Source: Octopus bimaculoides (Eukaryota). Taken from it: 55,277 nt of DNA. Position numbers and translations under genes: made by a program. The notes beneath the pieces were generated by a model that ran no database searches, was not told the DNA's origin, and saw only the letters and a list, made by a program, of their open reading frames with translations. The stretch is taken from the NCBI RefSeq assembly GCF_001194135.2, contig NC_068984.1:114994479-115049755 (forward strand), read 5' to 3'. Positions 23,750 through 55,085 of the stretch are shown piece after piece (position 1 is the first letter of the stretch; every line of letters begins with the position of its first letter).

Positions 23750-26467
23750 GTCTTGTTCAAGAACACAACATGCCACCACTCACAACATTCTGATCATGAG
23801 GTGAATACTCTCACCACTAAGCCACTATATATATATAGTCTTCTTTCAGTTTCCACCTACCTTATCCATTCACAGTGGAGGCGCAATGGCCCAGTGGTTA
23901 AGGTTCCCAGACTGGGCATTGTGTGTGTTTATTGAGTGAAAACACCTAAAAAGCTCCATGAGGCTCCAGCAAGGGGTGGTGGCAACCCCTGTTGTACTCT
24001 TTCGCCCCAACTTTCTCTTCCTGTTTCTTGAGTAACGCTGCAATGGACTGGTGTCCCATCCAGCTGGGGGGAACACATATGCCATAGAAACCAGGAAACT
24101 AGGCCCATGAGCCTGGCTAGGCTTTAAAAGGGCTCATAAAAAAAATATCCATTCACAAGGCATTGGTTGGTCCAGGACTATAGCCGAAGACACTTGCTCA
24201 AGGTGCCACACAGTGGCACTGAACTGAAAACAACATGGTTAGGAAGTAAACTTCTTAACCACACCACTGTACCTGTTCAGATAGTGGAATTAATAAAAAA
24301 AAAATCCCAAAAAGAACTAAAGACTGCAAACTTCCAATTTTCACCAGAAAACTTTTTTAAACTTTGCCCTGTTTGCTTTTTGTTTCAGTGTGTATTTTAA
24401 CAATTCTGTTCCCATGGAAATTAACATGTACATTATAGTCATGTTTCACATGTTCTTATTATAAGAGCTAAAATAACCTTTCACTCGTTTCACATTTGTT
24501 TAATCTGGATCCATTTTCTTTCTTCAGTTTCTTTAAAGATATCATCTCCTTATCTTTGCAGAACATACCAGTTTGTTAGGCCGGAAGAAAAATTACTGGG
24601 ACTACTTCTGCGAGTGCCTTGCTCCCAGTAAAGGACTCAGAGATGGCTTAAAATATGTCAAATCTCTTAAGGAGGTAAACAATTTTTTCTCTTATTTCAG
24701 GAATTATTTTAACTTTAGACACAGGCATGGATGCATTGTTAAGAAGTTTGCTTTGCAGCCACATGATTTTGGATTCAGTATGGCACTTTGGGCAAGTGTC
24801 TTCTATTATAGCTCTAGGTCGATTAATGCCTTGTGAATGAATCTGCTATCTGGAGACTGTATGGAAGTCTGTTGTATGTGTGTGTGTGTGTGTGTGTGTA
24901 TGTGTGTGTGTGTGTGAGTGTGAGTTTATGTATGTTTGTCTCCTTGTCTTGACATTGTGTGAATGTAAATGAGTGTCACTGTAATACAAGCAGTGTCATT
25001 CAATTCTGTAAAAATAAAAGTCTGGTCATGAGAAAATATTACCTTGCTTGCAAAAAGATTGAAGGTTGGCAGCAGGAAAAGCATCTGGCTGCAGAAAATC
25101 TACTTCAATAAATTTCATCTGACCCATGCAAGCATGGAAAAGTGGATGTTAAAACAGCAATGACGACAATGACAATGATTAAAAAATTAATAAGAGATAA
25201 AAATATTTTCAAAAATTAAAAAAAAATTATTAATATTTTTGTTTGTGAATATCTTTATTATTCTGAATATTTTTAAATTCTAAGTGTTGAAAAGTGGTAA
25301 GCTGACAGAATCATTTGCATGCCAGGCACAATGCTTAGTGACATTTTGTCTGTCTTTATGTTCTGAGTTCAAATTCCACCGAGGTCGACTTTGCCTTTCA
25401 TCCCTGCAGGATTGATAAAATAAGTACCAATTAAACACTGGGGTCAATATAAGTGATTTACCTACTCCCCTGAAACTATTGGGCTGGTACCACAATTTAA
25501 AACCAATATTAAGAGTTGACTAGGCGGTGAGCTGGCAGAATCATTAACATGCTGGGCAAAATGCTTAATGGTATTTTGTCCCTCTTAATGTTCTGAGTTC
25601 GAATTCTGCTGAGGTTGACTGGGCCTTTCATCCTTTCGGGGTCAATAAAATAAGTACCAACATCATTGACTTATCCCCTTCCTGGAATTGCTGGCCTTGT
25701 GCCAAAATTTGAAACCAATATTAAGTGTTGACTTATTTTATTTTGTTTCTTTATACAGTATCGCACAGCTTTAGGTAAAGGAAGAGCATTGATTCGGTTT
25801 GCCCTTGTCCATAAACGACTTGCAGATACAATCCAACAGTGTGTTTCAAATGGCCGTATCACAAGGTAATTGATTATTTTGGTTTTGCTCATTTTTGAAT
25901 TGGATAAAGTATTATCTTCTCTTTGCTTTGTTTTTTTTTTTTACTTTTCCCCATGTAAGTATATGTCGCTTGAAAATTTGGATATTTTCATATGAATTAG
26001 AAGGAATGAATATTTGTAATGTTAAGGTGCAGGTATGACTATGTTGTGAAGAAGTTTGATTCCCAATCAAATGGGTTTTGGTTTCTGTCTCACTCTGTTG
26101 CACCTTGAGCTAATGTGTTTTATGTCCCTATACCAACCAAAGCCTTGTGAGTGGATTTGCTAGATGGAAACTGAAAGAAACATGTTGTAAATACATATCT
26201 ATGTATGTACATATCTGTGTGCATGTATGTGTGTCTCCTCATATTGTCATTACATGTTCGTTGTCATACAAACGGTGTCATTCATTTCCAATCTTCTGTG
26301 AAAACATGTCTAGTCATGGAGAAAGATTAACTTGCTTGAAAACAAATGAGAGGCTTCATAACAGGGTAGGCCTCTGGCCATAGAAAATCTGCCTCAGTAA
26401 ATGTCATGTGAGCCGTGGAAGCACAGAAAAGTGACTGTTAAAATGACAGTGATGACGATGATGGTGA

Positions 26468-26501
<34 letters not shown>

Positions 26502-29500
26502 GGCAGTGGTGGCTAGTGTTATTATTAGCATGCCAGGAAAAATGCTTAATGGTATTTTGCCCATCACTACGTCCTGAGTTCAAATTCTGCTGAGGTTGAC
26601 TTTGCCTTTCATCTTTCAGGGTCAATAAAATAAGTACCAGTTGAGTACTGGGGTTAATGTAATTGACTAACCCTCTCCCCTAAATTTCAGGCCTTGTGCT
26701 TGTTATAGAAAGGATTATTATTATTATTATTATTATTTGTACTGTTAGATTCTTTATCTTCCCAATATTTGCCATTCTGGTATTATTGGGGATTGAACTT
26801 AACTTTTCAACTTGGTAGAGTGATGAAAATGTTATAATTTACCTCGGGCACATCTCAGTGGTAACATGAGAAATTGAACCCATCACCTTATTGGAACACA
26901 TACGTCATATGTACTTCATAATCAAATTGATTTTTTGATAGGGAAACAACTTAAAGCCAAATAAAATATCCAGTTTTAACATATCATACCAATGTTTATA
27001 TATACAGAACCGTGTAAGCTATATTTGTTATGACAAACATATACACACTGTTTTTGTGTAACATTGCTGTTTGTGTCACATCAGTGACAATATTTTGACT
27101 ATAGTTTTTGTAGTTGTCAGCTTTGATCAACCTCATACATCTTTGTGAAGGTTACTCCCTCTTTGGTGGTATCATATTATGATATTTTGAGCTCTGGACA
27201 ATATTTCATTAGTTAAACTACTAGTTCTCAACCATTTTTTGTTCTGTACCTCTTTCATGCAATCATGTTTTACAAACACCCACTCCCCATGTTTTGCAAT
27301 AAATAAAAAAATAAAGAGCAAAAAGAACCCCTCAAACTCCTTCAGTTGATTGTTTTAATCAATAGCAGTTAATTTTGCTCAATTGTTTATTATCTATTTT
27401 TTCTAATCACATCCCATCCACCATGTGTCTCTTTTTAACTATAGGGTTTTTTTTTACGCATATTAGCTAATGTTTTTCTATTTTCTTTAATTACCATCAT
27501 GGTAACTGGACCAGTTTGCTGTTGAAACATTTGTCAACCTGTAAAATGTGGAAGGACTTTTTTCTTCACCCTGGGCTAATGTCTCTTATGTTAAATTTTT
27601 ATGGAAATAACTAAAAAAAAGGCAAGGACTTATATAACAAAATCATATTGGAACCAAGCACATCATCAGTCGTGTTTCAGTTTACTGATAACACTATATC
27701 TTATTCATATTTTCTCATGACAAAGATTTTTATTTTAAATGTGTTTAAAACAAATATTGTGCCAAGTTTAAATATTTTATTTGCAAGAAAAAAAATCACA
27801 ATCCCTTTAAACCTTTAGCATTCAGATTACTTTATCAAATGTTATGTTTATTCATTCACATTATTTTGAATTAATCTTGCATTATCTTGTAGCTTTAAGA
27901 TTTCAAATGATGTGATTGTTTACTTTTAGAATGACATTATAGGGTAGATGCGAGAGGCCACATTTGGCTGGTTTGAACTTAAAACAAGTAGAACACTTGG
28001 ATCAGATATGGGAGGTTTTAAATGCTAAAGGGCTAAACACCCAATGTATCCCCTTGACATTTGCTGTCCCTTTGTGAGCTCAAAATACTTCCAAAGGTAT
28101 GCTGCCACTTAGGTTAACAACCACTGAGTTAGACATAGTAGAAGAGAAAAAATTTACTTATGAACTGAAATTAACATGAATTTCTAATTAAAGCTAGTTA
28201 CTCTGCTAATATTTTTGAGAAAGGCATGAATGTCACAGAATTTCAATTTTGTTCCTCAGATCTAAAGAAACATGTTTATGAAAGATATCAATATTATGCC
28301 AGTCAGTGTGAAGTCCTAGATATTATGCAGGTCTATTATAACAGGGGTTTTCAAACTTTTTGACTTGCAGACCCCTTTATATTTCAGGCTTTACCTTAGG
28401 GACCCCCTTATAAATGCTTGTGAAATTTATACATAAATATTTGCTTAAAATAACATATATTTTTACATTTATTTATTTAACAGTATTTAACAAATAGGTT
28501 TATTGTCAATTAAAAGATTTCGATTAAAAAACATATATAAAATCAAATTGCCCATAAAAAGTATTTGCTATCCCCCTGTGGTCCGCGGACCACAGTTTGA
28601 AACCCCCTGTATTATAAAACCATTTTGAAAGTGAAAGTGTGATTATTCTATAAACGAAGTTTCTAGAGAATCTAGGAATAAGAATAATTTTTGCTGATTT
28701 TGAGATATTTTTTTTTTTATCTTTCAGTGAATGGTTTTATCCATCATCTCCTTGGTTACAACACAAACACAGTTCGGTAATTATAAATGCACTGTATGAC
28801 ATCAATGATGTAAACTTCGATTTAATTCCTACAGGTTATGATTTAGACAACTCATGGCCTTCATTTGCCAGGTAAAATTTCACTGTTTCCTATTTTCAGT
28901 GTTTACATGTATTTAGTATATTTCAACTAAAAGTTGTATTTCTAATTAAAAAGTGATGACAATCTTTTAATTTACTTCTCTGTCAAATTTCTTGATTTAT
29001 CTTTCCTTCAAATCGAACATGAATCTGATTAGGTAGTTTTGGTCAGCTTTCAGTGCACAAATTTATGAGAAAAGAAGTGATCAGCTGAACTTTGAATGGT
29101 GATGCAGGAATTATTTATATCATAATTTTTGATCACATATTCTAGAAAATCTTAATATAAGCACTCATTTTTGTCAAATTCTTAACTGCTGAATGGTTTA
29201 GTCAATCATGAACAGAATCCAAATATCATGACATATATTTCTGAGCTCTCAAACTGTATGAAACTCAATACAATCACCAAAGTTCTAAACTGCTAAACAG
29301 TATTATAATAAGCCTGAACTTCAGAATCTATCTTGTTAGTTTTTTAAAAATTCAGTTAACTTTTGAGCCTTCAACATATTTTCTAATCATCATCATCATC
29401 GTTTAATGTCCATTTTCCATGCTGGCATGGGTTGAACGGTTTGACTGGAGACTGGCAAGCCAGGAGGCCTCACCAGGCTCCAATCTGATCTGGCAATGTT

Positions 29501-32500: not shown

Positions 32501-34700
32501 TAGCTTGGCATGTCTTCTCAAGTACAGCAAATAGCCAGAAGTTTCAGTTCCTTGCCATCTCCTCAGTGAAGCCCAGCATCTGAAGATCCTTTCTCTCCAC
32601 TTCATCCCACGTCTTCCTGGGTCTACTCCTTCTACAGGTTCCCGCCACAATTAGAGATCCGTACTTCTTTATGTGGCTGTCCCCATCTAAATTTGTATCA
32701 CGACTTTCGAACTTTGGGCCTCACCGAGGCAATGACTTCTGACCGAGATCTTTGGAAATATGCTGTGCGTGAGAAGACCCGGCAAGCCAAGTGAGACCTA
32801 AATCCAAGGCCTCTACCAGGATGTGTACCTTCCTACATTGGACACTAAACTCCGCTTGCGAAGACCTGTTGAGGCAAGTGAAATCGAACTAATTTTGACA
32901 GATGGCACCCATGCCAACATCGTCTCCTTCATTGGACACAGAAACTCGGCTTGCGAAGACCTGTTGAGGCAAGCGAAAGCGAAATCGTGATAGCACCTGN
33001 NNNNNNNNNTTCATTGGACACAGAAACTCGGCTTGCGAAGACCTGTTGAGGCAAGCGAAAGCGAAATCGTGATAGCACCTGTGCCCTGGAACTTGTGCCT
33101 AGGCACATGTAAGGACATTCGAGCGAGATCGTTGCCAGTGCCGCTGGACTGGCTCCCGTGCAGGTGGCACGTAAAAGACACCATTGTGAGCGTGGCCGTT
33201 GCTAGTACCGCCTGACTGGCCTTCGTGCCAGTGACATGTAAAAGCACCCACTACACTCTCGGAGTGGTTGGTGTTAGGAAGGGCATCCAGCTGTAGAAAC
33301 TCTGCCAAATCAGATTGGAGCCTGGTGTAACCACCTGGTTCACCAGTCCTCAGTCAAATCATCCAACCCATGCTAGCATGGAAAGCGGACGTTAAACGAT
33401 GATGATGATGAACTAGGGGAAGTCTCTGAAAGATTGATATCAGCTTATTTAATACACACATAGTTTGTCTTGTCACAAAATTCATAACTGGCATTGTATT
33501 CATAATCAAATCATTAATAATTTTCATATTTGGTTGCATTGTATGTTATTGTGGTACTGTGTTTAATGTAGTTTGGTTTTGTTTACAGGATAGTCCATCT
33601 TCTAAAATAGATGTTGCTTCCTCCTTTACTGAATCCATTGACGAACAGTACATGTCCCCTCGAGAAACAAGTTCTAATGTCTCCTGTTCAGAACTGTACT
33701 CTAAAATTGAAGAATTAGAAGAGGAGAAGTTCACTACAAGTCAGGAGGTTGCTCTTTGGGTTAAGAGACTTAATGAGATGAAAGAGAAATACAGAACACT
33801 GAAACAAGAGTAAGTGATGATAGTTCTTCTTCTTCTTCTTCTTCTTCTTCTTCTTCTTCTTCTTCTTCTTCTTCTTCTCACCTTCTCCTCCCCTTCCTCC
33901 TGTTTCTGCATCCTCCCCTTCCTCCTGCTCCCGCCTCCTCCCCTTGCTCCTTCTCCTGCCTCCTCTTTTTTCCGCATTGTTGAAATATATTGTGGTGAAT
34001 TTCATGTTTCAAAGCATTGCTTACTTTTTACTCAGCCTGATATTCAGATATCATTATTGATCGACAGATGCAGAATAGTTACTACACTGCGCAAAATGCT
34101 TCGCAGCATTTTGTCCGTCTTCATGTTCTGAGTTCAAAGTTCACTGGTTGTCCGGTTGACTGAACAACTAAATAATCACCTGTGAGATCTACTTACGTAC
34201 TTTGTATCATCTGATACCTAATATTTCTTCACCCTTTTGAGATATTTGTTTTCTCTATGTTTTTTCTATCTTTAATTTTTCCAGTTAATTATTTACAATA
34301 ATAAGCCTAAGTAAGTTTTTAATATAAACGTAAATTTCCATTTCCATTTGTCTGGGGAGAGTCATTCTGTTTTAATGCTTCATTAATAAACACACACACC
34401 ATTTCAATTTCCACTCGTTTACTTATTTATTTATTTTTTCTTAAAATTTTCATTGCTTCTTGTAACCTCTTCAATAGTTGTTGATTCTGTCTGTTATTGG
34501 AGCTGTGTTCTTTTTGTGTGTTTGTGTGCATGTGTGTGCATCAGCATGCATGTGTATACACATATGTATGTATGTATGTATGTATGTATGAATGTATGCA
34601 TGTATGCATATATGTATGCATGTATGCATATATATGTATGTGTGTATGTGTACGTTTGTATGTATTCTGCATATTCATGTGTTTGTGTGTGCATGTTTGT

Positions 34701-34771
<71 letters not shown>

Positions 34772-37700
34772 AAATGTATTTGTAAATATATCTATGACAA
34801 TTTCTTTTTCAAACTGATCATTCTCCCTGAATAGACTACCTCCTGTTTAGTTTTCACCTCAATTAGTTTAATTTCTTTGTTTGTAGGTACGATAGCCTGA
34901 GTTTGGAATTTAGCAGTTCACAGCAAGCCTGGCAAGATGAAAAGGATAGATTAGATTTAGAACGTAGAAATCTTACGGAAGGCCTCAAGTCTCTCCAGGA
35001 CAAATTAACTGAGATAGAACATGAACACGAACAGATTGTTAATACTAACAAATCCAGAATAGAAGTCTTGGAGAAGGAGAAAACTATTCTGGAACAACAA
35101 ATAAATAGTCTCAAGTCAACAGAGGTAGAATTTGCTGAATCAACAGCAGTTCAAGAAGAACAGTTTCAATCTTTGTCATCATCGCAAGAAAATGAAAATG
35201 ATGTTAATGATATTAATGAAGATGATGATGATGATGATGTTGATGATCATGTTGATGATGATGATGATGATGATGTCGTTGATAATGAAGACAGTGTAGA
35301 ATATTTGAAGCAAGAATATGAAAAGATCCTATGGGAAAATCGACGTCTGCAGCGGAAATGTGAAGATTTTGAAGAAGTGCAACGAGAACTGCACAGACAG
35401 AATGAAGAGCTTGTGATGCTACAACAGTCTGTTGAAGAGAAAGCTGAGCTGTTAAACAAATACCAGCAACAATCTCAGCATCTAAAATCTACCTTGAATA
35501 ATCTTTTAGATTTTGACTCTATTGATGATCAGGTAAGTTATGTTTATATTCTGGATACATTTGTTAACCGTTTTGGTGCCAACCTGCCTGAAACTACCCT
35601 TGGTTCTATGATACACATTCTGTTTTGAAATGAGTTGACTTAAAAAATCTCCCATCAAAATTTCATGTTGATTTATATTCCAAACATCAGCTTAATAAAG
35701 ACAAAGTTATTTTAACAAATTCATTATATTCAAAATTACTTGAAACAAAGGTTGTGTATTTCAATAGAAACATGGTTACAAAAGGGTTATAGGATATAAA
35801 AATAACTACGAAAATTATATAGATTACAGATGATTAAATTTGATATATTAGCAGAAAGATGGCCCCCAGGCAGTTTTCTGCTAGCCCCTTGCTAATATTT
35901 TCTCATTTGATTCCCAATTGTAATAATTTTTATATTTTACAGCTAATTATTTCTTTGTATAATAGTGCTTACTTGCTTAGTAAATATTGCTTTCATTATT
36001 TTATCACAGTCATAATCTATCTCTTTTAAACAAACATCTTGGTAGTCTAACATCAAAGGAGATGTACTTGCGTAGCAAGTGACTTGATCTGAGATCGTGT
36101 GCTGAAACAAAAACAATTGCAGCATGGAAGATGTTTGTAAGCCATTCAAGAACACACAAAGATAGCTAGTTTCACTTCAACATTTAAATTTCATTTGTGT
36201 CAAAATATTTTTGTCACTTTGAAACTGTGACAGGATTGATGCAGCACGAAGTTTTGTCAGTGAACAGGTCATGGTTTCAAAGCAACAAAAATATTTTCAC
36301 ACAAATGAAATTTAAATGTTGAAGTGAAACTAATTTCTTGTGTGTTCTTGAATGGCTTACAAACATTTTCCACGCTGCAATTGTTGTTGATTTTAAAAAA
36401 GAGTTATGTAAACAATAATTCATTTTAATAGCATACTTTTCAGTTAGAAGATGTTTTTTTTTACACACACACACGCATGGCTTCGCTTCCTTCAGGTGGG
36501 GATAAAAATTTAGATTACAATTTATTTTGTTTTTCTTCTACCAATGCACCACGCATGTGTTACTTCGGNNNNNNNNNNNNNNNNNNNNNNNNNNNNNNNN
36601 NNNNNNNNNNNNNNNNNNNNNNNNNNTTTTTTTTTTTTTTTTACCAAAAAGACTCCTCCCATGGTTTTTAAGTTAAAAAGGAAAAATGGCCCAAATTGGT
36701 CTGGATAGTTATTATTCTAAGGCTTATAGTGTTCCAAACAGCCATAACAACAAAATCACTTTAAAAACTTTTCATTCAATAAATAATGTTTTTACATTAC
36801 GTATACATTAATAGAATAAACTGTTGGTTTTCCAAATAGCAAATTAAAACTTAAAATGAAAATATTAAAAGAGAGAGTGAGAAACTTTGCAAATGAAAAT
36901 GGATTACTCCACAGTGAATGCAATGAATATTTAAATTTGCGAAGAATTGGACACAGTGAATGCAATGAATATTTAAATTTGCAAGAAATTGGAGTTAAAT
37001 AATTCAATAAACTTGAGAAATCGAAATTATAGGAAATTTCTTAGAACATGAATTTATAAAAATATTTCCAGACGGTCAAGCCTTTAATAATTGCTTTCTT
37101 TTAGTACTTTTAGTAATTGTTACATATCTAATTAATAAGCAGCTTTCTCCATTATAGTATAGAAATGTAGATATATATTTATTCTTGTTAAGGAAGTATG
37201 ATGTTAAGAGCCCAAGATAGAAAGGGAAGTGACTCCATCAATTACAGGATTGTGACTTCAAGTGTACTTAATGACACTCAATAGTTGTAATATAGCAGAG
37301 ATAGTTTCTCTGAGGCTTCATGCAACAGTGGATCAAAATCAGCTGGGTGGAACCTTATAGAATTATTACTAAAATCAAATGATGATTTGAGTGTGGATAC
37401 CAACGAGTGTAGTGGATTGATAGAATCAGTAGAGTGGTGGACAAAATGTCATGTAGTATTTCATTATATTCTTTTATGTTTTGAATTCAAATCTTATTGA
37501 GATTGACTTTGCCTTTCATCTTTCCAGTGTCAGTAAAATAAATGTCTGTTGAATACTGGAGTCTATCTGTTCAACTACATAAATCCTCCAAATTTGAGGC
37601 TATAAACTTATGTTAAAAATCAATTTAATTTCTTTTTTTTTTGTGTTGGAGCATTTTTATTATGCTTGCATATGGATCTGGTTTTATACAGAATTATATA

Positions 37701-49751: not shown

Positions 49752-51565
49752 GCAAGTTTTTTTTCAATGTGTTTGTTTTGCTTTTTTTTTTTAGCATTCT
49801 GTTCTTTTGTGTTTTGTGACATTGCTTGCTTGTGCCACTAAATATTAGTTATTGAGCATCACGACTCTTTCTTACAGAAGAATTTTTCCGAACTAACATT
49901 TAATCAGCTTGTTTCTTTCTAGTGTTAATATAGCACAGACTTGTATGTTTTTTAAAAATTACTTTGATTGCTAATTTAACCATCCTCTTCAATGTGAATG
50001 AAGCAACTTTAGAAATTTTGGAAAAAGAAGGAAAATGTTTAACATTTACATCTACTCTGTGTTTTGATTCTTTTTAATCTCTGACCATAATTAGATGTGT
50101 TATTCCTTAATACATACATAATTGCAGACTGATTTCAAGCTAGAAACCTTTATTTTTAAAACTTATAACATTTTTGTATTTGATCTGTTAGATTCTTGAT
50201 GTGAATTTGTGTGTTGAGACAGATTTTGTTGTATTTTGGGAGGATCATTACACCAATAATAAACACATGCACTGGTTCAGTTTCACTTCTTTATTATTCA
50301 TCAATTGGTTAGCTATTTAACCAAATAACTAATCAACTATTTGCTTGATCATTCGGTTAATCAGTCAAGCAGTTGTGTTTGCCAAAGTTCTTTTGAAGCT
50401 GATCTGGTGAAGAGAGGGCATATCATTGAAGTGGTCAAGAATGGCAATGAAAGGACTTTAATGAACACAAATGACTGATATAATAACATTCTTATTTATT
50501 TAGCTGCTTATATATGAAAATGATTGAACATCATATTAATGTAAATGTAAACAAATTTTCAATCCATTTCTAAAGATGTGGTTAATACAATTAATAAATG
50601 AAGTAAATTGAAAGGTCATTTTAACAAGCATGCTAACTTCATTTTGGGGTCACTGACCTCATTGACATCTATAAGAGGATATTGATATCATTTACAATGG
50701 GCACATTAGGTATTTTATATATGATAGTTAGTTAATCAATGCAATTAATTTCATCATAGTGCTGGTGTATTAATACCAGCATAGTGCTAATATTTTGATT
50801 TCAAATTTTGGCATAGGGCCAGAAATTTTGGGGGAGGAGTGACCCCAGTACTCAGTTGATACTTATTTTATCAATCTCAAAAGGATGAAAGGTTTAAGTC
50901 AATCTTGGCAGAACATGAAGACTGATGAAATGCTGCTAAGCATTTCACCTGCTGTACTAATGATTCTGCCTACTTGCCACCTTACATAGTGCTAATACAT
51001 TAATACCAGTATTATAGTGTATTGGATCCTACCTGATTGAATGAAATGCAAAATTTAACTGTGTCAAGATTTGAACTTGGAAAAAGTTTCAGAAACCAAG
51101 GTAGAGAATTAATGTGACCTTGAGCAAAACGCTTCATTTCACATTGCTCCAGTACACTCAGCTGTGCATGGGTGACCCTGAAACAGACTGGCGTACATGT
51201 GCACACACACAATTTGTTTTTTTAATGGTTGAACTTGAAGTAGGTAAAACTATAAATAGTAGTGTGTAAATAAAAAACACTTTGGACAGAAAAAGTTGAA
51301 GGCTGCTCACCCAGTGTGCACATACTCTTATTTATAGCTTTATCTGCTTAAAGTTGAACCATTAAAAATGCATTATTTCATGTTCTCTTGAGGTTTCTAA
51401 ATTCTTATGATGTAAACAATATAGATGTATAAGATGTATGTATGTGTGTATGTATGTATGTATGTATGTATGTATATTACTGTTTGTTTTTATGTTCAGT
51501 TATAATAAAAGCTATTTTACATTAATCTGAAGGGTTACTCTGTACTTTTGTAGAGTACAAATTTA

Positions 51566-51831
51566 TTGAAGTAGTTGTATGCTGTCAACTTAATGTGACA
51601 GTCCCATGAAGTCATGCTACTCCAGACTGATGATGAGCAAAGACTCAGAAACATGTCTCTGGATGCAGGCTTAGCTGGGTGGAGGTGCTTGTCTCCTCCT
51701 TGTAAACATAAGGACACAGGAAATGTGTCAAGGCCAACAGGAAGCAGTGCAGCTTCCTAGGTCTAAACAACAGTAGTATTATTCCCTTCATGGGACTGTC
51801 ACATTAAGTTGACAGCATACAACTACTTCAA
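51566..51831. other. 266-bp hammerhead-bearing element bounded by a perfect 46-bp inverted repeat
   Basis: 51566-51611 TTGAAGTAGTTGTATGCTGTCAACTTAATGTGACAGTCCCATGAAG is the exact reverse complement of 51786-51831. The spacer holds a hammerhead and several hairpins. No TSD seen. Confidence 0.9.
51621..51663 (+). ncRNA. Minimal type I hammerhead ribozyme
   Basis: Stem I TCCAGA/TCTGGA; core CTGATGA (51627-51633); stem II TGAG/CTCA with loop CAAAGA; GAAA; palindromic stem III ACATGT; cleavage triplet GUC (C51657). All invariant core nucleotides are present. Confidence 0.85.
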
Positions 51832-51943
51832 CGTATCACTACTGTATAAATCTCTCTGAGAGATTTAGAAATGTACTATTTCTAATACAAATTTATTATT
51901 CTTATATTCTTATACAAGGATATTGTTGACAGTGACTTTGAAA

Positions 51944-51995
51944 TTTCGGCCAGCTAACCCATAGTCTGATGATAGCTTAGCTGGCTGAAACTGAT
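51944..51995 (+). other. Degenerate hammerhead-like motif inside a 14-bp hairpin
   Basis: CTGATGA (51966) T AGC...GCT GAAAC (51987-51991), but with no convincing stem I or III. TTTCGGCCAGCTAA / TTAGCTGGCTGAAA pair with one G.U. Confidence 0.4.
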
Positions 51996-52318
51996 AATTA
52001 TTCATTAGGTGCATGCAAAACAGTGAAAATATAAACAATAACATATCTGTCCATTCTAAATATGTTCTGGCAGATTTGAATGTGACTATACTGATTTTTA
52101 GTGTATTTTGTTATCAGAGAATGTATCTTTCCTTTAGAAGATGTGTCTTCATAACACACTCAGTTCATTAGGATGAGGGAACTTTAAAATACTGTAGTGT
52201 TTCAACTTCATGTTTGAATCTGCTAGAATGTATTAAGAATGAATGAATACTTTGTTGTTTAAATTTTTGCTGTTTTGAATACAGCCTACGAATTATCATA
52301 AGACATCAATACTTTATC

Positions 52319-53360
52319 TCATCATCATCATCATCATCATCGAAGGTCTTGCCTCACCACCTCAGCCCAGGTCTTCCTGGGCCTACCTCTTCCACGGGTT
52401 CCCTCAACTGTTAGGGTGTGGCACTTTTTCACGCAGCTATCCTCATCCATTCTCACCACATGTCCATACCAGCACAATCGTCTCTCTTGCACACCACAAC
52501 TGATGCTTCTAATGTTCAGCTTTTCTCTCAAGATACTTACACTTTGACGGGTATTCACATTGACATTACACATCCAACGGAGCATACTGGCTTCATTCCT
52601 TGCGAGCTTACGTATGTCCTCAGCAGTTACAGCCCNNNNNNNNNNNNNNNNNNNNNNNNNNNNNNNNNNNNNNNNNNNNNNNNNNNNNNNNNNNNNNNNN
52701 NNNNNNNNNNNNNNNNNNNNNNNNNNNNNNNNNNNNNNNNNNNNNNNNNNNNNNNNNNNNNNNNNNNNNNNNNNNNNNNNNNNNNNNNNNNNNNNNNNNN
52801 NNNNNNNNNNNNNNNNNNNNNNNNNNNNNNNNNNNNNNNNNNNNNNNNNNNNNNNNNNNNNNNNNNNNNNNNNNNNNNNNNNNNNNNNNNNNNNNNNNNN
52901 NNNNNNNNNNNNNNNNNNNNNNNNNNNNNNNNNNNNNNNNNNNNNNNNNNNNNNNNNNNNNNNNNNNNNNNNNNNNNNNNNNNNNNNNNNNNNNNNNNNN
53001 NNNATGTGTCCATAGCTTGCACCGGGTACATCTTATAGAGTTACTACCTACTCCTTTTCTACATACTGAGCAGGGCCATCTACCTGAAGGGGTTTGTGTT
53101 TTATCTACCTTCCTACTTATTAGGATTTTGGTTTTAGCTGGGTTGACTCTAAGGCCCTTCAATTCTAGACCTTGCTTCCACACCTGAAACTTCTCCTCTA
53201 GTTCTGATAGTGACTCCGCAATTAGGGCAAGGTCATCAGCATAGAGGAGCTCCCAGGGGCAACCTGTCTTGAACTCCTCTGTGATTGCCTGGAGGACTAT
53301 GATAAATAAGAGGGGGCTGAGGACGGAACCTTGGTGGACCCCTACCTCTACCCGGAATTC
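52319..53360 (-). mobile_element. RTE-clade LINE RT fragment, 5'-truncated, lacking its 3' UTR
   Basis: EFRVEVGVHQGSVLSPLLF...LLYADDL...LRVNPAKTK...WPCSVCRKGVGSNSIRCTRCKLWTH, an N gap, then LRWMCN...RRLCWYGHVVRM...GRGRPRKTWAEVVRQDLR directly followed by (TGA)n. Confidence 0.92.
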
Positions 53361-53660
53361 ATGTAAATCAACACAGATTCTACAGTTTGGTTGTCTTCTT
53401 AAATTAATCATCCAAGAAGGTAGAGAAGCTAATTCCTGTTTAGAATTATAAAAGCCTCGCATCATTTGTTTGTCACCCACTTTTGTCTCCTCCTTTACCT
53501 AAAATTTCCCGATATTACCTCACTCTTTCTTGCAATGTTTATAATGTTTTGATAGTAGCTAGTGAATCTTTTCCCTTTTTCTGTCTTTCATAATATTTTA
53601 TAATAATTTAAAACCATCAAAGGTAAGTTAATTCTCAATAATAGCTGCTACCCTGCATAT

Positions 53661-54435: not shown

Positions 54436-55085
54436 ATCATCATCATCATCATCATCGTTTAATGTCCGCTTTCCATGCTAGCATGGGTTGGACGATTTGA
54501 CTGAGGACTGGTGAAACAAGATGGCTGCACCAGGCTCCAATCTGATCTGGCAGAGTTTCTACAGCTGATGCCCTTCCTAATGCTGACTACTCCAAGAGTG
54601 TTGTGGGTGCTTTTACATGCCACCGGCACAAAGGCCAGTCACGCGGTACTGGCAACGGCCACGCTCAAATAATGTTTTTATGTGTCACCTGCACAGGAGC
54701 CATTCCAGCGGCACTGGCAACACCCTCGCTTGAATGTTGTTTTCCACGTACCACTGGCACAAGTGCCAGTAAGGCGATACTGGTAACAATCATGCTTGAA
54801 TGGTGCTTTTTACATGCCACCAGCACGGGGGCCAGTCAGCGGCCCTGGCAATGATCATGCTTGGATGGTGCTCTTAGCACTCCACTATCACGGATGCCAG
54901 TCATGCGGTGCTGTGATCGAATTTGATTTCAATTTCACTTGCCTCAACAGGTCTTCACAAGCTGAGTTTAGTTTCCAATGAAAGAAAGGTACGCTGGGCT
55001 GGTTACACCACTGGCATAGGCCACAGGTTATGGTCTCACTTGGTTTGCCGGGTCTTCTCAAAGCACAGCATATTTTCAAAGGTCT
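54436..55085 (-). mobile_element. RTE 3' UTR copy with an (ATC)n tail
   Basis: Reverse complement of the 32702-33410 family, including the ORF end (GAGAAGACCCGGCAAACCAAGTGA on the minus strand). Confidence 0.85.

Follow-up and report, generated by a model that had tools for sequence, protein, structure and literature searches.

Hammerheads are present in the pseudo-LTRs of Penelope-like elements (PMC4209133, PMC8557442). Insertions of these elements are highly 5′-truncated and their 5′-end is often adjoined by an inverted 5′-truncated copy, which results in inverted repeats; the tail of 30–40 bp is often found at one end only, and the length of the target duplication is variable (PMC8557442). 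In vitro, a Penelope-like protein cut and extended both DNA strands with a preference for AT-rich (ATT) targets. Reverse transcription started internally in an AC-rich stem-loop approximately 90 nt downstream of the hammerhead cut site, and the tail was identified as the sequence lying between two start sites (PMC11167929). The animal non-LTR retrozymes consist of short tandem units of approximately 170–400 nt with type I hammerheads (PMC7229834). According to a recent proposal, they descend from Penelope pseudo-LTRs as non-autonomous elements; their dispersed monomers are common, and 42–44% of the copies are intronic in two Xenopus genomes (bioRxiv 10.64898/2026.07.22.740005). Type I hammerheads also occur in Schistosoma Sm-alpha (Sm1/N79), newt satellite 2, and cricket pDo500. 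The amniote hammerheads HH9 and HH10 are ancient, ultraconserved motifs of type I, which lie in sense orientation in introns of protein-coding genes.

The locus described here belongs to a 55,277-nt stretch of Octopus bimaculoides DNA that was analyzed as a whole (hereafter the window, from the first base of which all positions are counted). It had been predicted to be an undescribed element, that is, a hammerhead enclosed by a perfect inverted repeat within an intron of FYCO1. The observation itself proved to be real, and the link to Penelope-like elements and retrozymes suggested by the prediction was upheld. The interpretation as an undescribed system bounded by inverted repeats, however, is not supported, since the left arm is a copy of the element's own 3′-terminal 44 nt placed beside a target duplication, and a 56-nt tail lies on the opposite side. 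What was found looks like a Penelope terminal repeat of the usual kind in which an inversion occurred once, which the prediction itself had named as the competing explanation. The best reading is that the locus belongs to the known Penelope-like/retrozyme kind of insertion: with a probability of about 0.72, its 318 nt represent a young retro-insertion, non-coding and dead, which was derived from the hammerhead-bearing terminal region of a Penelope-like element or from a relative of the non-LTR retrozymes, and which lies in sense orientation in an intron of the FYCO1 orthologue.

The locus has several features in common with Penelope-like insertions (Evgen'ev & Arkhipova; Craig et al. 2021, PMC8557442; Mob DNA 2024, PMC11167929), namely the position of the hammerhead close to the 3′-end of the unit, a partial copy of that 3′-end inverted at the 5′ side, a tail at one end only, an AT-rich target with a duplication of variable length, and a proximal end located in an AC-rich region beside a stem-loop. 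In contrast, the tail is 56 nt instead of 30–40 nt, the inverted copy is just 44 nt long, and the hammerhead has the "canonical" metazoan/retrozyme proportions, not those of the long-helix-II minimal form of many Penelope-like elements. The Penelope assignment proposed here is based on this insertion signature and not on a linked reverse transcriptase or endonuclease gene. With the non-LTR retrozymes (Cervera & de la Pena 2020, PMC7229834; Li et al. 2026 preprint), the locus shares the type I order, helices I/II/III of 6/4/2 bp, the palindromic loop, and a non-coding, self-paired unit, whose size (274 nt) falls within 170–400 nt and whose GC content (42%) is below 50%; intronic monomers have also been described among them. 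However, it is a single unit and not a tandem repeat, and would count only as a "monomer derivative". Consequently, no circular RNA could be released from the locus by its own hammerheads. The Sm1/N79-type hammerheads, including those of the newt and the cricket, resemble it in their type I order, in loop 2 (CAAAGA here and CAAAUA there), and in the UAC bulge 6 bp up helix I, but helix III, a 2-bp palindrome here, is stable in Sm1, and the 10.1–11.1 pair is U–A instead of G–C.

Genomic setting and anatomy of the probable insertion

The plus strand of the window carries an orthologue of FYCO1. Three RUN-domain frames (19971–20156, 24537–24833, and 28654–28872) matched PDB 7BQI_A, "FYVE and coiled-coil domain-containing protein 1", with an E-value of 7.6e-36, and the RUN exons are followed by long coiled-coil exons at 33.4–41.1 kb. 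A Logan contig (SRR11869391) carries an exon of 92% identity, and a protein search with the RUN exons gave no match. A FYVE-type exon was not found anywhere in the window; thus, FYCO1 very probably runs past 55 kb, and the element is then intronic and in sense orientation, which makes the predicted location plausible. On the minus strand, a GIY-YIG fragment preceded by Cx4CxxC was detected at 13407–13709 (21.8 bits with Pfam, just below the cut-off of 22.6), suggesting that Penelope-like remnants are present in the genome. Fragments of LINE reverse transcriptases lie at 52620–53480 and 3–503, both on the minus strand. The former ends in a (GAT)n tail at 52319–52342 and stops short of the element. 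The draft contains many N gaps, those nearest to the element being approximately 800 nt and 2 kb away. Other foldback structures also occur in the window, for example at 36105–36392.

The two arms (51566–51611 and 51786–51831) are complementary in inverted orientation without a mismatch over 46 nt, with a spacer of 174 nt between them, just as predicted. The prediction was wrong, however, in stating that the element has no target-site duplication, since a perfect 12-nt direct repeat, TACAAATTTATT, was found on its two sides (Table 1). The left copy stops exactly where the left arm starts, and the right copy is situated 55 nt past the right arm. When 20,000 random positions within this same window were inspected in the same loose geometry, direct repeats of at least 12 nt appeared at an empirical rate of 0.0022. 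A flush duplication at the ends of the arms, which would be expected for a DNA transposon or a MITE, is absent. We read the 12-nt repeat as a target-site duplication, which would frame an insertion of 318 nt (51568–51885) composed of a 44-nt inverted copy, a 218-nt sense body, and a 56-nt tail. The complementarity of the left arm extends 2 nt into the duplication, to 51566; the two additional pairs that bring the arms to 46 nt are formed by TT in the duplication with AA at the beginning of the tail. According to this insertion model, the empty orthologous site in the FYCO1 intron would read ...GTAGAGTACAAATTTATTATTCTTAT...

Table 1 Features of the proposed insertion and of its hammerhead, with positions in the window
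Feature	Position	Strand	Basis or remark
Left copy of the putative target-site duplication, TACAAATTTATT	51556–51567	.	Perfect 12-nt direct repeat with 51886–51897; AT-rich, contains ATT
Left arm, inverted copy of the last 44 nt of the element, without the tail	51568–51611	−	Exact reverse complement of 51786–51829(31)
Sense body, 218 nt: hammerhead, hairpin-rich region, and right arm	51612–51829	+	Contains no ORF; found once in the window; folds together with the left arm
Type I hammerhead	51615–51667	+	Descriptor scan, shuffles, and Sm1/N79-derived covariance model; core 51621–51663
Outer extension of helix I, UGC/GCA	51615–51617/51665–51667		Leaves a UAC bulge six bp from the core
Helix I, UCCAGA/UCUGGA	51621–51626/51658–51663		6 bp
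CUGAUGA box	51627–51633		
Helix II, UGAG/CUCA	51634–51637/51644–51647		4 bp; loop CAAAGA
GAAA	51648–51651		
Helix III, ACAUGU	51651–51656		Palindrome
Cleavage site, GUC	51655–51657		C17 is C51657; cut predicted after C51657
Hairpin-rich region 3′ of the cleavage site	51664–51785	+	GGAGG/CCUCC, CCUUG/AAGG, GACACA/UGUGUC, AGGAAGC/GCUUCCU; minimum-free-energy folds
Right arm, original 3′-terminal segment	51786–51831	+	Stem-loop CTGTCA..TGACAG, AC-rich end; reverse complement of the left arm
56-nt tail with a perfect hairpin (51847–51867)	51830–51885	+	Follows the right arm and precedes the right copy of the duplication; no left counterpart
Right copy of the putative target-site duplication, TACAAATTTATT	51886–51897	.	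Perfect repeat of 51556–51567

The unit, that is, the sense body together with the tail, is 274 nt long, non-coding, and highly self-paired, with a GC content of 0.42. We propose that the sense body represents either a 5′-truncated or a short non-autonomous unit. The inferred 3′-ends lie 172 and 228 nt downstream of the hammerhead. The 51813–51845 segment contains 64% A+C and 9% G, versus 48% A+C across the window, and the presumed proximal start site (51829–51831) is situated in this AC-rich, G-poor stretch, just 3′ of the stem-loop. Frames starting from the ATGs at 51630 and 51653 end after 14 and 35 codons, and downstream of the hammerhead no Penelope-like ORF was present. No further copy of the element was found in the window: blastn with a word size of 7 on 51000–52620 returned only its own inverted repeat and microsatellites. 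A 73-aa frame across the element, used as a query against the called ORFs, gave no match. Exact and degenerate DNA scans for this hammerhead in metagenome and viral collections were likewise negative, and its sequence had no match in the text of the literature searched. The tail was also considered as the beginning of another unit in tandem, but this was rejected, as it aligned to the start of the unit no better than shuffled sequences did (p 0.2).

The hammerhead motif

All core positions of the hammerhead are present in type I order and three helices can be recognized, the third one only as a palindrome. In a monomer, helix III would comprise 2 bp closed by an impossible 2-nt loop, while in a dimer it would extend to 6 bp; cleavage is thus predicted to need a dimer, in agreement with the original prediction. 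The claim that every core base is intact stands for the 11 core positions, but the adjoining 10.1–11.1 pair is atypical, being U51634–A51647 and not the highly conserved G–C. Alternatively, helix II can be read as starting with a G–C pair, in which case one U is supernumerary after A9 and one A before G12. Such a U has been reported to be conserved in Penelope-type hammerheads (PMC4209133), and it was also present in all four hammerhead families retrieved here.

When both strands were scanned with a descriptor, the window yielded this hammerhead and one weak, chance-like site. A motif of like quality (≥6 bp in helix I and ≥4 bp in helix II) was encountered in one of 300 dinucleotide-preserving shuffles of the window, which corresponds to approximately 0.003 expected per window. 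An independent covariance model was built from the Schistosoma N79 and Sm1 hammerheads only (sequences from PMC12550524 and PMC3245953) and applied to the window in an unfiltered search. The 51616–51670 segment was its sole significant match in the 55 kb (28.6 bits, rough E-value of 2.4e-6, full model length), the next best hit reaching 11 bits. These results bore out the presence of a type I hammerhead with a GUC site, which had been postulated 9 nt inside the left arm. With Rfam 15, no hammerhead was found at the gathering score in the whole window, nor at E ≤ 10 in segments of 901 and 76 nt; these scans gave only weak snoRNA, miRNA, and SRP look-alikes, arising from the UGAUGA box and the long stem. 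The negative Rfam result is weak evidence, because RF00163 gave just 15 bits, against a gathering score of 34, to a clear member of a multi-copy hammerhead family in one of the metagenome contigs described below (L008). A likely reason for the Rfam miss is the U–A in place of G–C at 10.1–11.1. A hairpin at 51944–51995, which contains CTGATGA and GAAAC, was considered as a second hammerhead and discarded: its helix II does not directly adjoin the core boxes, the Sm1/N79 model did not match it, and no significant similarity to the real hammerhead was obtained.

The predicted folds contained the four hairpins of the spacer and the two hairpins flanking the element, as claimed originally. The spacer alone exceeded shuffled sequences in stability only marginally (z −2.2). 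The whole region had a z of −12 owing to the arms. The left arm and the sense body were folded into a clamped rod, and hence the closed rod foreseen for the transcript was reproduced as a long clamped stem by folding. In the full-length fold, the pair probabilities of helices I and II were 0.4–0.9.

Analogous structures in metagenome contigs

When hammerheads sharing this loop 2 and helix III were sought with a degenerate pattern, 12 eukaryote-like metagenome contigs were obtained. One hammerhead family, having the sequence CUGAUGA-U-GGCC-AAAUA-GGCC-GAAACAUGUC, was found in nine of them (eight distinct ones, as L013 is L008 reversed). The copies have variable 5′-ends, and their 3′-end is either at ...TTTTCATT or 35 nt further, after GTTACATACGCAACGGGGATGCCTCAACTAGAGAT. 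Thus, this family shows the same two alternative 3′-ends with a tail between them. In L002, L008, and L012, the 35-nt tail behaves like the one-sided tail of the window element, and an inverted 5′ copy forming inverted repeats occurs in these three contigs and in L007.

L008 contains two head-to-head copies with arms of 189 nt, which are 96% complementary and each include a hammerhead; they are framed by a 12-nt duplication, CCAACTCAAAGA, and the tail is present at one side only. The arms of L012 are formed by an inverted 3′-end copy of 38 nt with the tail and, opposite to it, a sense copy without a tail; the 223-nt spacer between them contains the hammerhead. L007 represents a further head-to-head case, with a candidate duplication matching at 11 of 12 positions and a one-sided extension of approximately 36 nt. 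In L002, arms of 49 nt surround 115 nt holding the hammerhead. Its flanks are 89–93% identical to those of L008, so that it is the same locus lacking 237 nt from the center of the palindrome. The comparison of L002 and L008 indicates that a short-armed clamp can also arise by a deletion inside a longer head-to-head insertion. Since the arms of these contigs are 38, 49, and 189 nt long and consist of each copy's own 3′-end, they are copy-specific. No ORFs of at least 150–180 aa were found beside the analogues, and consequently their assignment to Penelope is also based on the insertion signature.

Probable origin of the insertion and its presumed place in the FYCO1 transcript

We infer that the insertion was formed by priming on both strands of the target. 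A GIY-YIG-type endonuclease would have nicked the two strands of the AT-rich target TACAAATTTATT 12 bp apart. The 3′-OH of the bottom strand would then have primed at the distal template site, 51885, from which 274 nt were presumably copied through the right arm, the hairpins, and the hammerhead to 51612, while the 3′-OH of the top strand would have primed at the proximal AC-rich site, 51829–51831, where only about 44 nt were copied. Joining of the two cDNAs would yield the inverted 44-nt copy at the 5′ side, the one-sided 56-nt tail, and the 12-bp target-site duplication. The left arm begins right at the duplication, which fits the assumption that the top-strand nick also primed reverse transcription, and the tail would be the stretch between the proximal (51829–51831) and the distal (51885) start sites. 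In a variant of this scheme, a longer head-to-head double insertion may have been formed, the center of which was deleted later, as seen between L008 and L002. The hammerhead would be a hallmark of the family, serving the processing of multimeric element RNA. Of the two readings originally offered for the mismatch-free arms, young or constrained, the former is retained; the identity of the arms and of the duplication copies is ascribed to their having been written recently from one template and not to selection.

Part of these traits could be left by other processes. A hammerhead-containing template RNA, such as a retrozyme or satellite transcript, might have been inserted by a LINE reverse transcriptase with a 5′ inversion resembling twin priming. 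The 12-bp duplication and the AT-rich target suit LINE endonucleases as well, twin priming yields 5′ inversions, and the LINE reverse-transcriptase fragments mentioned above (52620–53480 and 3–503) lie nearby. We regard this route as unlikely, as the 3′-end has neither poly(A) nor a microsatellite, classical twin priming inverts a unique 5′ segment and does not duplicate the 3′ terminus, and a tail defined by two start sites has been described as Penelope-specific (PMC11167929, PMC8557442). Even lower is the probability of an undescribed MITE-like or foldback family carrying a hammerhead, in which the arms would be fixed terminal inverted repeats recognized by a transposase or needed for the rod RNA. 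The element is indeed short, non-coding, and hairpin-forming like MITEs and foldback elements, its terminal inverted repeats are perfect over 46 bp, the whole unit folds to a clamped rod, and the window has other foldbacks (e.g., 36105–36392). Nevertheless, the 12-nt duplication is not flush but asymmetric, being offset by 55 nt on the side of the 56-nt tail, the arm is the element's own 3′-end instead of a transposase-binding terminus, the analogous metagenome copies differ in arm length and have arms formed by their own 3′-ends, and no second copy is present in the 55 kb. The least probable of the explanations is an artefact, by which the inverted duplication would be an assembly error of a gap-rich draft or the hammerhead a chance match. 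The many N gaps and the lack of an Rfam hammerhead match would fit this, but the nearest gaps are approximately 800 nt and 2 kb distant, and the abutment of the arm on the duplication is unlike an assembly error. Moreover, the chance expectation of the motif is 0.003, the independent model gave an E-value of 2e-6, and Rfam assigned only 15 bits to a clear family member.

If the locus is a Penelope-type retro-insertion, as we favor, its value is mainly in annotation: a structure that looks like a ribozyme enclosed by perfect inverted arms is interpretable as a footprint left by double-strand priming of the Penelope type, whose marks are the duplicated target, the inverted copy of the 3′-terminal segment of the element itself, and the tail on a single side, and not as a new class of mobile elements. 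It also provides a clean single-locus illustration of the two-start-site model deduced from in vitro work. Should the family be abundant and young in this genome, it would offer a useful natural system for studying Penelope-type integration. A more speculative, and in our judgment doubtful, extension is that the locus belongs to an undescribed family of very short non-autonomous elements, a "hammerhead SINE", which would combine a canonical-type hammerhead at the extreme 5′-end with a 3′-end recognized by the Penelope machinery. Double-primed insertions of such a family would routinely produce long perfect RNA duplexes in introns. Such duplexes would serve as input for RNA editing or for small-RNA pathways; conditional self-cleavage of the FYCO1 pre-mRNA would be a less likely outcome.

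The insertion itself is presumably without function. The suggestion that it has been exapted as a conditional cleavage site in the FYCO1 pre-mRNA, or as a dsRNA for editing or dicing, by analogy with the amniote hammerheads, appears very improbable. Like HH9 and HH10, it is a sense type I hammerhead in an intron, its core is intact, and the global fold accommodates helices I and II, but unlike them it looks very recently inserted, as judged from the perfect arms and duplication, and there would have been no time for selection. Efficient cutting of the FYCO1 pre-mRNA is also unlikely, since there is only one hammerhead, whose helix III comprises 2 bp and a 2-nt loop, and a second copy would be needed for dimerization. 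The U–A instead of G–C at 10.1–11.1 probably reduces the activity of the hammerhead further. For the minimal hammerhead with short helix III, the single copies tested from Schistosoma mansoni had no detectable self-cleavage (PMC4209133). Nevertheless, the locus places a 46-bp perfect RNA duplex and a hammerhead with an intact core in the FYCO1 intron, and the duplex, which is predicted to form in the pre-mRNA as a by-product of the insertion, could be edited or diced.

Palindrome collapse and hammerhead families in metagenome contigs

Comparison of two eukaryote-like metagenome contigs carrying members of one multi-copy hammerhead family revealed that L008 (4700-5212) and L002 (9995-10207), which come from different metagenome samples, cover a single locus and differ by a 237-nt deletion. 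In L008, the locus is occupied by a 450-nt head-to-head double hammerhead insertion with 189-nt arms; the deletion leaves L002 with one hammerhead, held between arms of 49 nt. The pair illustrates palindrome collapse in nature. Three more, unrelated hammerhead families were found on contigs L003, L006 and L011; a U directly 3′ of CUGAUGA and the GAAACAUGUC palindrome were present in all three, and helix I of the L011 hammerhead was a clean 5 bp.

Detection of hammerheads with a short helix III

With the Rfam model RF00163 (Hammerhead_1), the window hammerhead (51605-51680) did not score high enough to be reported, and a clear member of the multi-copy family (L008, 5097-5139) reached only 15 bits, the gathering score being 34. 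The curated model evidently under-detects hammerheads that have a short helix III and an extra U after A9. A hairpin approximately 300 nt 3′ of the real hammerhead, to which it aligns loosely (29/41), was also considered as a hammerhead, and was ruled out by its structure, by the custom covariance model (built from Schistosoma Sm1/N79 hammerheads only) and by alignment statistics.

Gene and repeat context of the window

The RUN domain of the FYCO1 orthologue (match to PDB 7BQI_A, E 7.6e-36) is followed downstream by long coiled-coil exons. No FYVE or GOLD exon was found within the window, therefore the gene probably extends past its 3′ end.

Features of the window
Feature	Position	Strand	Remark
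FYCO1 orthologue exons	19971-20156, 24537-24833, 28654-28872, 33430-33810, 34867-35625, 38071-39174, 40865-41122	+	RUN domain, coiled coil
Further foldback/inverted-repeat structures	36105-36392; 47441-47807; 48302-48675; 51219-51368; 51991-52302
SINE-like dispersed repeat	e.g. 12485-13393, 14987-15679, 19499-20044, 33102-33353, 39174-39455, 54505-54851	both
(ATGT)n microsatellite	51425-51477
Open frame	13407-13709	-	Cx4CxxC, then GIY-YIG motif (VVYSIRS...YIGETSRS)
Hairpin	51944-51995	+	9-bp stem; contains CTGATGA, GAAAC next
LINE-type reverse-transcriptase fragments (RVT_1, zf-RVT)	52319-53480	-
	3-503	-
	1259-1579	+

Approximately 80 nt separate the (ATGT)n microsatellite from the insertion site of the hammerhead element downstream. 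Penelope-like elements reportedly prefer microsatellite or AT-rich targets; the target of this insertion is itself not a microsatellite. The open frame with the GIY-YIG motif, which adjoins an N gap and scored 21.8 bits with the Pfam GIY-YIG model (cut-off 22.6), looks like the remnant of a Penelope-like endonuclease. An N gap also splits the LINE fragment at 52620-53480(-), which is terminated by a (GAT)n tail at 52319-52342.

The SINE-like repeat can be recognised by its pseudo-translation. The foldbacks are candidates for MITEs, microsatellite palindromes or more head-to-head insertions; in the one at 36.1-36.4 kb, arms 55 and 78 nt long are nested, and the 162-nt arms of the inverted repeat at 47.4-47.8 kb are 92% complementary.
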